Shown here piece by piece: positions 53,879 to 57,358 of a DNA stretch of 64,000 bases (its first letter is position 1; every line of letters begins with the position of its first letter). Location of the stretch: assembly GCA_033442325.1 (NCBI GenBank), contig JAWQFM010000013.1:1457847-1521846 (forward strand). Direction: 5' to 3'. The stretch comes from Salpingoeca rosetta. Lineage: Eukaryota > Protista > Choanoflagellata. A program made the position numbers and the translations under genes. The notes under the pieces were generated by a model that was not told where the DNA came from, searched no databases, and saw only the letters and a program-made list of their open reading frames with translations.

Positions 53879-56800
53879 ATGAAGTTTGGACGCCGTTTGG
53901 AGAGTGGATTGATGGAGAAAGGATGGGAAGACAAGTACATCCAGTACAGGGCACTCAAGGTACGCAATCTCACAGCCACAGGGAGGGGGGTAACACCTCC
54001 CGTTCCTTGAATGTGTGTGTGTGTGTGTGTGTGTGTGTGTGTGTGTGTGTGTGTGTGTGTGTGTGTGTGTGTGTGTGTGTGTGTGTGTGTGTGTGACATT
54101 TCATGTGCGCTTGTTCATCAATCAATACACATCTTAGCCATCTCGTGTGCCATGACGTGCACGCTCATGGTACATTGGAACAACGCTCATTGGCCACCCG
54201 GGTGTTTCGATGCAGGAACTCGTCTTCGCCATCACCTCCAATGGTGAGAGGGAAAACCAGGAGAGTCTGGTGGACGCGTTCATGCAGATGCTGACAGATA
54301 ACGTGGATGTGGTGGACGCCTTCTTCGAGGAGACCATCCACAAGTTTGAAGCGTTGTGGGGCCGATGCCCTCGCTTGTCTGGTGACCATCGCCTTCTCCA
54401 GCCTGACGCCGCTCCACTCGACCCAGTCACTGGACTCAACACTGCTCAAGATGTCGATGACAACAGCAGTGACGACAACACCGACACTGTGAATGGCGTT
54501 GGTCTACAAGAAGCGACCGCTCCTGCACCAGAAACCAACAGCACGAGCACTCACTCCTTTGCACAGAACAGCAGCGATCAAGCCGAACCTGAAGCCGACA
54601 CCGCCGAGAACCCAGCTCCTGCGAGCTCGTCCCTTCCTCTTCCAGAACGTGACACGCTTCGAGGCCACCTTCAGGCAATCCTGGCCAACACAGACTTTTC
54701 AACAACGGTCGGTGCATCGTGAGTGTGTGCTTGTGCGTGTGTATGTGTCTGCGTGTGTGTGCGCGTCTGTGTGTATGTGTCTGCGTATGTGTGTGTGTGT
54801 GTCTGTGTGTGTGTCTGTGTCTGTACGTGTGTGTGTGTCTGCCTGTGTCTGTGTGTGTCTGTGTCTGCCTGTCTGTCTATGCATTCGTCTGCCGTTGTCC
54901 CACCCTCATCACCTTCATGTGCGCCGATTGTCTTCCATTGTACTGTTCCACACATCCCTTAAAACACTCGCAAACAACACACACACACACACGCGCGCGC
55001 GCGCGTGCACGCACAATTCACGCCATTCTGTAGGATCCGCAAGTGGTGGGTGACCACGCGGCTGAGCAGTACCTCCATGCATATGTGGCGTTGAGCGAAC
55101 AAGCAGAGGCCCTCCGCAGGTTTGTCGTCGTTAACCAGGCGGCGCTCAGCAAGATTATCAAGAAGTTTGAGCGACGCGTGCTTGCGTGCACCCGTGTTCC
55201 CGCCGACCACACTCGTACGCTGCGAGCTCTAGTCCTGCAGTGCGCGCAGGGTGACAGCATGGAGCGGCTACAGCAGCTGCAAACGGACTTGCGTGAGCTT
55301 GGAGACGAGCTGATGATCTCCTCGAGTGCCTTCCACGAGTACGTGTGCAGCCTGCGCACGCAGTACTGGGCGCAGCTGGCCGAGCACCAGGCACAAGCAA
55401 AGGAGACACGCCACTTCACAGCCAAGCCGCGTGCAAAGCGGCTGGCATCGCTCACAGATTTTCGCCAGACCTTTAGTCCCGCCATCATGCTGGTGGTGGA
55501 GACAATCATTGCGGTGGGGACGTTGGTCAGCACGTACACGCTGTCAAGCAACATCATCGTCGACAAGGAAACCAACATGACCGTCTTTGAGAAGAAAGGC
55601 ACGCTCACATGCGGTTGTGTGTGTGTGTGTGTGTGTGCGCGCGCGCGCGCGTGTGTGTGCGTGGGTGTGTATGTGTGTGTGTGTGTGTGCGTGTATGTGT
55701 GTGTGTACCTTTTTCTTGCTTCAAGATGCCACCGCTAACGCGCTCTCGCGCTTCCCTTTCCGCTCACTGCTCATCATCGTCATCGTCATCGTAGGTTACT
55801 TCATCTCCGCGTCCATCGACAAGTCCCCCGCTTCCCATATCGGCACTCTTGGTCTCTCCATCAGCTGCTTTGGCCTTGCTGCCATTGTTCTCGTGCGACA
55901 CAAGGTGCGTGACGTGTGTGTGTGTGTGGGGGGGGGATATGTGTGCGTGTCTGTGTGAGTGTGGGAATGTGTGTGTGTGTGTGGGGGGGGGGGGATATGT
56001 GTGTGTGTGTGCCAATGTGTGTGTGTGTGTGTGGGAATATGGGGGTGTCTCTCTCTCTCTCTCTCTCTCTCTCTCTCTCTTCTCCGCGCTTTTTTTCNNN
56101 NNNNNNNNNNNNNNNNNNNNNNNNNNNNNNNNNNNNNNNNNNNNNNNNNNNNNNNNNNNNNNNNNNNNNNNNNNNNNNNNNNNNNNNNNNNNNNNNNCTC
56201 TCTCTCTCTCTCTCTCTCTCTCTCTCTCTCTCTCTCTCTCTCTCTCTCTCTCTCTCTCTCTCTCTCTCTCTCTCTCTCTCTCTCTCTCTCTCTCTGTGCT
56301 TGTGTTTTTCTCTCTCGATATGTCTATCCATCCATCTCCAACTATGTCTGTGTTCGATTCTGTGTACGTTGACATTGATGGCTGCGATTATTTCTCTGGT
56401 TGCAGTTGAACAGCACATGCACATGCCCTGCTCACGTCATTCTCCTCCACGCACGCGCCCCGACCCCTCCCTCGCCCTCCCCTCTTTCCCAATCCTTGGT
56501 GGCAGTTGATGAAGCGTTTGCTTGCTGGCCGCGCAACACTGCTGCACCGCTTCTCGCTCTTCCTTGCGCTCATCAGTCTCTTCTCCGGTGCTGGCGTGGC
56601 TGCATATCAGGTGGGACGCACCACCACATCATGTGCTTTGTATCTTGTTCACGCGCACACGCAATGACTGTCATGTCCTTGCTTGAATTGTTCCCCTCCC
56701 TCACCCAACGCACACACACACACGCACGCACGCACGCACACACACACACGCACACACGTGTCATTCTGCCTTCTTCGGTGGCGTGGCGTTGCAGCATCAT

Positions 56801-57358
56801 CTGCACAAGCTTGGCCACAACACATTTGCAGTCCTCTTCTTCATCCTCGCCATGATCCACGTGGGCATCGACAACTTCATCGAGCGCAAGTACAAGCTGT
56901 ACTCCAGACTCGCGCGCACCGTTCGCTTGGTGTTCGTGGCGCTGATTGCAGTGTCTGTGGTTGTGTTTCTGACATTTCTGCGCATGAGCGGGGATATGGA
57001 CTCGCCCCAGCGCGACCACAACCTCCTCTTCATTGCTGCCGTCGCTGAGCTTGCTGCCTTTGGCTTCCTCCTCCTCTACTTCCTCACCCTCCTGCCCAAC
57101 TTCAACAAGACCCGCCTGTACATTGTGCTCGTTGAGCGACGGGCCACCACCATCCTGGAACCGTTCCGCGTGGATGCGTTTCTCACCACCGACCACCGCG
57201 TGACGGCGAGCGGTCGCCGCCTCCTCCGCAAGACGTCTCAGCGGCTCAGGCGCTTCCGCTCATCCGCGCTCCCCACTGTCGACATGAACGGCATTGTGCC
57301 CCGCCTGCAGCAGTTTGTGGGCGCCACGCCTCGGCGACGGAGGGCAAAGGCCGAGTAG
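53879..57358 (+). CDS. SPX domain fused to a Frag1/DRAM/Sfk1 (TMEM150-like) multi-pass membrane domain, about 6 exons
   Basis: SPX motifs MKFGRRL...[17 protein letters not shown] and [21 protein letters not shown]. Membrane motifs [38 protein letters not shown] and [22 protein letters not shown]. Confidence 0.85.
56098..56197. other. Assembly gap (100 N) within an intronic (CT)n tract
   Basis: Run of N. Confidence 1.

Follow-up and report, generated by a model that had tools for sequence, protein, structure and literature searches.

The DNA analysed here is a window of 64,000 nucleotides of the Salpingoeca rosetta genome (contig C13, 1457847-1521846), and the gene under consideration is PTSG_05735, which occupies positions 53879-57358 of the window on the + strand. 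Its six exons encode a protein of 638 amino acids (aa) that combines an SPX domain with a membrane domain of the Frag1/DRAM/Sfk1 family. PTSG_05735 is a genuine, transcribed, single-copy membrane-protein gene. It seems that the product is an SPX-controlled Frag1-family membrane protein with an output in membrane-lipid homeostasis, an explanation to which, taken as a whole, we assign a probability of about 0.6. Such a protein would add a new output domain to the SPX-regulated membrane proteins; its architecture is catalogued in the databases and undescribed in the literature searched.

The spliced translation is identical to database protein P0001 ("hypothetical protein PTSG_05735 [Salpingoeca rosetta]") at 638 of 638 residues, and only one copy of the gene was detected in the S. 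rosetta genome. The Pfam search with the whole protein returned SPX (PF03105) at 49 bits, against a gathering cut-off of 27.8, and Frag1/DRAM/Sfk1 (PF10277) at 61.2 bits, against a cut-off of 30.3, the latter covering residues 343-555 and positions 5-218 of the 220 in the profile. Since both scores exceed the gathering thresholds, the two assignments are not due to chance. When the exons were scored separately, SPX was still recognised at 26 and 17.2 bits.

SPX domains are general eukaryotic receptors of phosphate status, and the outputs described for them nearly all concern phosphate transport, phosphate storage or starvation transcription. In PTSG_05735, the residues of the SPX ligand surface are present as K2 in the N-terminal MKF (1-3), as Y23-x3-K27 in YRALK and as K231-x2-K234-K235-x2-R238. 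The last of these corresponds to the lysine surface cluster K-x2-K-K-x2-K of the long core helix, with arginine (R238) in place of the final lysine. The PDB sequence search gave the SPX domain of Gde1 from Chaetomium thermophilum (5ijj, E 6.6e-5) as the closest solved relative. The alignment to it matches both the MKFG...Y-x3-K part (5ijj residues 1-27) and the KI.KK..K segment, and the cluster aligns to KITKKLDK of 5ijj and to KILKKLDK of the SPX-ankyrin protein of S. rosetta. Judged by these alignments, the ligand surface is intact, as the initial annotation of the stretch had claimed for the same residues.

Structure prediction agrees with the sequence comparison. The AlphaFold model exceeds a predicted local distance difference test score (pLDDT) of 90 in the SPX core helices, including residues 20-70. 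The Foldseek search against PDB ranked XPR1 chains at the top, matched via their SPX part, and isolated SPX crystal structures (5ijj, 8tyu) were matched with target TM-scores of 0.61-0.70 and a probability of 0.99-1.0. The helical-bundle SPX fold is thus present in the predicted structure. It is interrupted at residues ~84-166 by an acidic, Ser/Thr-rich insert, which is disordered (pLDDT <50).

The membrane part comprises six hydrophobic segments, modelled as six long AlphaFold helices at pLDDT >90. Its motifs include GYFISASID...P (380-391), VRHK (413-416), AAYQ..H..FA..FF (448-467) and E536...YFLT; the first of them, encoded by exon 4, is nearly invariant in the family alignment. Residues P391, H459, F462, A463, F466, R495, A533 and E536 are invariant in an alignment of 33 sequences. 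The invariant polar residues of the clade that lie in or near the membrane are D388, H459, N460, R495 and E536; most of them are modelled towards the outer half of the membrane, and we infer that they would fit a lipid-facing pocket. The loops after the second, fourth and sixth transmembrane segments (TM2, TM4 and TM6), which face the SPX side, are rich in Lys and Arg; the first outer loop contains an N372-M-T sequon. By the positive-inside rule and with a cytosolic SPX domain, both ends of the membrane domain would be cytosolic.

The fold comparison points to the same family. The ESM Atlas model of the membrane domain has a TM-score of 0.88 to an arthropod "CWH43-like N-terminal"/Frag1 cluster, and the AlphaFold model one of 0.79 (root-mean-square deviation 2.5 A, 218 residues) to a chordate Frag1 cluster. 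Pfam gave no EXS, MFS or VTC match on the whole protein, and the structure search of 48,161 PDB chains gave no XPR1/EXS, MFS or VTC row for the membrane domain. Only generic helical bundles appeared there, Ste2 and the adiponectin receptor; the best of them, Ste2, reached Z 11.8, under the helical-bundle noise level of the tool, and both were rejected. Likewise, Foldseek against PDB found no solved structure matching the membrane part. The restriction of the PDB matches to generic bundles agrees with a 2026 preprint, according to which no Frag1-like structure has been solved so far (PMC13370385).

These results bear out the initial annotation in its main points: the fusion is real, its two domains being above the Pfam cut-offs, expressed and conserved in other species; the membrane part is Frag1-like rather than EXS, MFS or VTC; and the AlphaFold/Foldseek check it had suggested yields two confident domains that match SPX structures and Frag1 clusters. 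Its "DRAM/TMEM150 hallmarks" fared less evenly. The motifs themselves are present and conserved in the clade, but they do not suffice to place it, as the name implies, with DRAM/TMEM150/Sfk1 over PGAP2/CWH43-N.

The full-length AlphaFold model, built from a 21-sequence alignment, has a mean pLDDT of 76.5 and a predicted TM-score of 0.65. Its values exceed 90 along the SPX helices, along the six membrane helices and over the greater part of the linker; the basic C-terminal tail (564-638) is disordered (pLDDT <50). The linker (~248-335) is helical, and its RL..L...L.DEL..SSS.[FY].EY motif is conserved in the family alignment. A second model, of residues 240-565 from the 33-sequence alignment, has a pLDDT of 81 with the membrane part above 90; here, without the SPX domain, the linker helices drop to 40-70. 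This drop on removal of SPX suggests that the linker helices have SPX, and not the membrane domain, as their packing partner.

The continuity of the gene follows from its transcripts. The SPX lysine-cluster helix (AlphaFold 199-243) and the first transmembrane helix (TM1, 340-363) are both encoded by exon 3 in a single open frame, which rules out a gene-merging artefact. A spliced transcript contig (X4, record 11, 893 nt) aligns at consecutive record positions to 55350-55596, 55793-55902, 56504-56607 and 56792-57223; the contig cuts have an ambiguity of 2-3 bases, within which these blocks coincide with the modelled exon edges. The record thereby joins exons 3, 4, 5 and 6, with zero extra letters between exons 4 and 5. 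The assembly gap at 56098-56197 is flanked by the end of exon 4 (55904, phase 0) and the start of exon 5 (56506, phase 0), and, because record 11 joins 55902 to 56504 directly, it is intronic and no exon is missing. The transcriptome-derived orthologues are also continuous at this point, with no added residues (VRHK/LMKRLL in S. rosetta, VRHKMMKRLL in Hartaetosiga). The initial annotation had based the same view, that the fusion is no merging artefact, on the exon shared by SPX and the first transmembrane segment, and the single frame and the contig over exons 3-6 confirm it.

Record 8 of the X4 contigs contains the joint of exons 1 and 2, and an X4 contig that of exons 5 and 6, both GT..AG. 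Further contigs cover exon 2 (54214-54538 and 54552-54706) and exon 3 (55050-55336 and 55350-55596). For intron 2, the strong GTGAGT donor at 54719 was rejected because the frame is lost with it. The weak donor at 54708 (ACG/GTCGGT) keeps the frame and reproduces the database protein, in agreement with the end of X4 record 9 at 54706; this assignment rests on the contig end and the protein match, the junction being absent from the transcript rows examined. Intron 3 is of the GC..AG type, because the spliced X4 contig ends exon 3 at 55598; two in-frame GT donors 15 and 18 bases downstream, at 55614 and 55617, are not used. In run X18, stranded RNA-seq reads map to the exons, exon 6 included, and the minus-strand orientation of their first mates corresponds to + strand RNA. 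The coordinates are collected in Table 1.

Table 1. Exons, introns and encoded features of PTSG_05735 (positions in the window)
Feature	Position	Strand	Content
Exon 1	53879-53959	+	Residues 1-27; N-terminal SPX helices with M1-K2-F3, Y23 and K27; Pfam SPX positions 1-26, 26 bits alone
Exon 2	54216-54707	+	Residues 28-191; continuation of the SPX bundle (helix 39-75) and disordered insert ~84-166
Exon 3	55034-55598	+	Residues 192-379; SPX lysine-cluster helix, last SPX helices, linker, TM1 and start of the outer loop; one open frame
Cluster K231, K234, K235, R238	55151-55174	+	Exon 3; Pfam SPX positions 290-328
TM1	55478-55549	+	Exon 3; residues 340-363; AlphaFold helix 340-363
Intron 3	55599-55794	+	GC..AG; AAAG/gcacgc...cgtag/GT
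Exon 4	55795-55904	+	Residues 380-416; GYFISASID motif and TM2, ends VRHK; Pfam Frag1 positions 43-76
Intron 4	55905-56505	+	Contains the assembly gap (56098-56197), flanked by (GT)n-like and (CT)n repeats
Exon 5	56506-56610	+	Residues 417-451; cytosolic loop LMKRLLAGR and TM3, ends GVAAYQ; phase 0 to phase 0
Exon 6	56795-57358	+	Residues 452-638 and TAG; TM4-TM6 (H459, N460, R495, E536), basic tail 564-638; Pfam Frag1 positions 119-218

The introns of PTSG_05735 are repeat-rich. Those at 53960-54215, 54708-55033 and 56611-56794 are (GT)n-rich after the donor and (CA)n-rich ahead of the acceptor. A stretch of 31 bases just ahead of exon 4 (55762-55792; CTCATCATCGTCATCGTCATCGT-like, G>A at 55785) is common to another, highly expressed transcript with a depth of up to 744 in run X5. 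The flanks of that transcript do not match the PTSG_05735 locus, and the high depth in this bin does not come from PTSG_05735. Upstream, the transcript contig of the neighbouring gene reaches ~53848-53852 and that of the SPX-Frag1 gene begins at 53859, so that the two transcription units are apparently only ~10 bases apart. The downstream neighbour is a convergent open reading frame (ORF) on the - strand (57789-58658). It scores 56.6 bits for the zinc-binding dehydrogenase domain PF00107, and no connection with SPX-Frag1 is evident.

The SPX-Frag1 architecture was also found in Hartaetosiga balthica (P0006, 606 aa), in Monosiga brevicollis and in three environmental lineages. In M. brevicollis there is one clear copy (P0007, A9V2P3, 570 aa), a fusion annotated without the MKFG start, as well as a clearly partial gene model (P0005, A9V3J6, 433 aa), which keeps the SPX lysine-cluster helix and lacks the N-terminal start and TM1. 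Run-assembly contigs encode the fusions P0013 (553 aa) and P0016 (653 aa), the latter as one uninterrupted ORF with SPX at 47 bits and Frag1 at 65 bits. A partial transcript of Microstomoeca roanoka has 63% identity. The near-identical P0021 and P0029 come from a 101-kb ENA contig (L002), where gene calling left out the SPX start. The first SPX exon of P0029 is found upstream in another frame (L002:90-240; MVKFGNRL...W..Y..Y..LK, YAELK), and therefore the source organism of L002 also has the full fusion. As judged from these sequences, the fusion is conserved in related species.

The members of the fusion clade share 28-47% overall identity, and most of them keep K2, Y23, K27 and KxxKKxx[RK]. 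Of the six aligned members that are not identical, with P0021/P0029 counted once, five retain the K-x2-KK-x2-[RK] cluster; in this pair, the last basic position has moved by one (KKYKRW). The SPX domains of S. rosetta and P0016 score 47-49 bits in Pfam, and several orthologues fall below the cut-off with 16.7-23.9 bits.

The reach of the family is narrow. The exhaustive phmmer search with exon 6 against 1.84 billion representatives returned only 20 proteins at E<=0.001; those whose source was looked up come from choanoflagellates or from metagenome and run assemblies, with no identifiable animal or fungal family member among them. The fusion is confined to a few lineages, none being seen in animals within reach of this search. 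With the membrane domain as query, the profile search gave metagenomic proteins only and no named DRAM/TMEM150/Sfk1 or PGAP2/CWH43-N sequence. Among its matches are ~25 stand-alone Frag1-like relatives of 245-410 aa, metagenomic in origin, with the motif GYFLSAAID.PPASNFGSLG and no second Pfam domain. This stand-alone sister group (P0014, P0015, P0020 and P0048-P0067) is Ala/Arg-rich and common in metagenomes. When the full protein or the family alignment was used in word-index searches, almost nothing was found and even known orthologues were missed, so the blanks of these searches mean little.

The maximum-likelihood tree of the membrane domains places eight fused or choanoflagellate sequences on one side of a 100/100 branch, apart from the stand-alone relatives. 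The tree is unrooted with long branches; a single fusion event would fit its topology.

The SPX-Frag1 protein is one of about four SPX proteins in S. rosetta. Two tandem SPX-EXS (XPR1-like) genes are located on contig C1 (3013378-3019570), and C14 (188000-196000) contains a Gde1-like locus in which an SPX-ankyrin ORF precedes an ankyrin-GDPD ORF; these two ORFs are probably one gene. The six-frame search of the genome found no second Frag1-like gene at its sensitivity. The genome search also found no VTC domain, and the SPX repertoire of S. rosetta therefore differs from that of yeast.

Among known systems, the SPX-EXS exporters XPR1, PHO1 and Syg1 resemble PTSG_05735 in having an N-terminal cytosolic SPX domain directly before a polytopic membrane domain. 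In those proteins, however, this domain is EXS, whereas in PTSG_05735 it is a six-helix Frag1 domain with no EXS match by Pfam or fold. Yeast Sfk1, TMEM150A-C and DRAM1-2 share the PF10277 family and the six helices, and the TM-scores of 0.79-0.88 to animal Frag1 clusters, obtained between predicted structures, belong to this comparison. They are, however, proteins of ~230-330 aa without SPX, and the SPX-Frag1 clade is too distant from them for phmmer to reach the named members. PGAP2 (FRAG1) and the N-terminal domain of Cwh43 belong to the same Pfam family too, and the nearest Atlas cluster carries the automatic name "CWH43-like N-terminal domain"; Cwh43 nevertheless has a C-terminal part that PTSG_05735 lacks, and nothing places PTSG_05735 in the glycosylphosphatidylinositol (GPI) pathway. 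SPX-ankyrin-GDPD proteins of the Gde1/Pho81 type include the best solved sequence relative of the SPX domain and have a counterpart on C14, but they are soluble with enzyme or inhibitor outputs, while PTSG_05735 is an integral membrane protein.

The architecture is catalogued, both Pfam domains being tagged automatically in the databases, but undescribed in the literature searched. The SPX and Frag1 tags of P0001 are precomputed, and its UniRef name is "SPX domain-containing protein". In the literature searched, no paper mentions an SPX domain together with Frag1, none among the matches listed pairs the phosphate-sense SPX domain with Sfk1, TMEM150, DRAM, CWH43 or PGAP2, and the locus tags, UniProt identifiers and run accessions of the PTSG_05735 family are not mentioned. 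The SPX architectures listed in reviews are those with EXS, MFS, RING, VTC and ankyrin/GDPD and the solo SPX proteins. The earlier statement that no SPX-DRAM fusion had been described thus holds for this literature, but not for the databases, where both domains were already tagged. The SPX-Frag1 fusion is known from sequence alone.

Sfk1 and TMEM150A are linked to the recruitment of phosphatidylinositol 4-kinase (PI4-kinase), the DRAMs to autophagy, and PGAP2 and Cwh43 to GPI-lipid remodelling. To our knowledge, no biochemical activity is known for the Frag1/DRAM/TMEM150/Sfk1 family. A bacterial protein of the related family DUF998, whose Pfam clan is shared with Frag1, is linked to the levels of a lysyl-glycolipid. 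Sfk1 is associated with phospholipid asymmetry and sterol retention (PMC5935070, PMC8694040). Inositol pyrophosphates, above all InsP8, bind the basic SPX surface and report phosphate status; when they bind to XPR1, its SPX domains change position and the transporter opens (PMC13573052).

The proposed mechanism combines these elements. PTSG_05735 consists of a cytosolic N-terminal SPX domain with a disordered insert, a conserved helical linker, a six-helix Frag1/DRAM/Sfk1-family domain and a basic disordered tail. The basic SPX surface (K2, Y23, K27, K231, K234, K235, R238) would bind inositol pyrophosphates, the levels of which report cytosolic phosphate, and this binding would shift the position or the pairing of the SPX domains, as in XPR1. 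The helical linker may transmit the change to the membrane domain and switch its activity. By analogy with Sfk1/TMEM150A, DRAM, PGAP2/Cwh43 and bacterial DrmA, that activity would lie in membrane-lipid homeostasis, as PI4-kinase recruitment, lipid asymmetry or remodelling, or lysosomal function. Ligand binding by this SPX domain, the coupling of the domains and the output are all inferred from related proteins. The weak step is the last, in which membrane-lipid homeostasis is taken as the likeliest output because it is the common thread of the family.

Several observations weigh against this explanation. The biochemical activity of all Frag1-family proteins is unclear and none of their structures has been solved; for these reasons, the output is a guess by analogy. 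The membrane domain may belong with DRAM/TMEM150/Sfk1 or with PGAP2/CWH43-N, named members of both being absent among the search matches. Expression is low in the sole raw RNA run (X18, depth 0.3-5), and the lysine cluster of P0013 is degenerate (KRLVDKVSS).

It is unlikely that the membrane domain instead transports or conducts phosphate, or a solute bearing it, under gating by SPX as in XPR1, PHT5/VPT and Pho87/90/91. Most described membrane partners of SPX are phosphate transporters, as is established and stated in reviews; the polar residues that the clade keeps invariant within or close to the membrane (H459, N460, R495, E536, D388) would suit such a role, and the absence of a detected VTC domain in S. 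rosetta also favours it. Nevertheless, the domain matches EXS, MFS, SLC13 or VTC neither by sequence nor by fold, no Frag1-family member is established as a transporter, and S. rosetta already has the two SPX-EXS genes. We regard as improbable, too, that the SPX domain is blind to inositol pyrophosphates and provides the membrane domain with a constant scaffold or pairing module. The orthologues with SPX scores under the cut-off, the loss of two of the four cluster positions in P0013 and the long disordered insert that interrupts SPX are what such a module would explain. The 47-49 bits of S. rosetta and P0016 speak against it, as do K2, Y23, K27 and KxxKKxx[RK], whose retention in most members across 28-47% identity argues for selection on the ligand surface.

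The third alternative, an annotation or assembly artefact merging two genes over repeats and a gap, is effectively refuted. The locus does contain an assembly gap and repeat-rich introns, and no single contig spans the entire coding sequence. Against this stand the SPX helix and TM1 in the one frame of exon 3, the spliced contig over exons 3-6, and the same architecture in transcriptome orthologues and in the uninterrupted 653-aa ORF. SPX control of a Frag1-family protein acting in membrane-lipid homeostasis remains the reading we prefer.

The further step, that SPX-Frag1 represents a new output branch of inositol-pyrophosphate signalling, is a tentative and rather doubtful one. In such a branch, phosphate status would directly switch a Frag1-type protein and thereby membrane-lipid homeostasis, including the supply of phosphatidylinositol 4-phosphate, lipid asymmetry or remodelling, or lysosomal autophagy. 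The proposal of the initial annotation, that phosphate status may directly gate phosphoinositide or autophagy functions, is equally tentative. Choanoflagellates are regarded as the closest living relatives of animals, and S. rosetta is genetically tractable. A natural, conserved SPX-Frag1 fusion suggests a direct link of phosphate status with membrane-lipid or lysosomal functions in choanoflagellates, which are amenable to knockout. If this is true, the clade could offer the first handle on the biochemistry of the Frag1 family, because here the regulator is built into the same protein.

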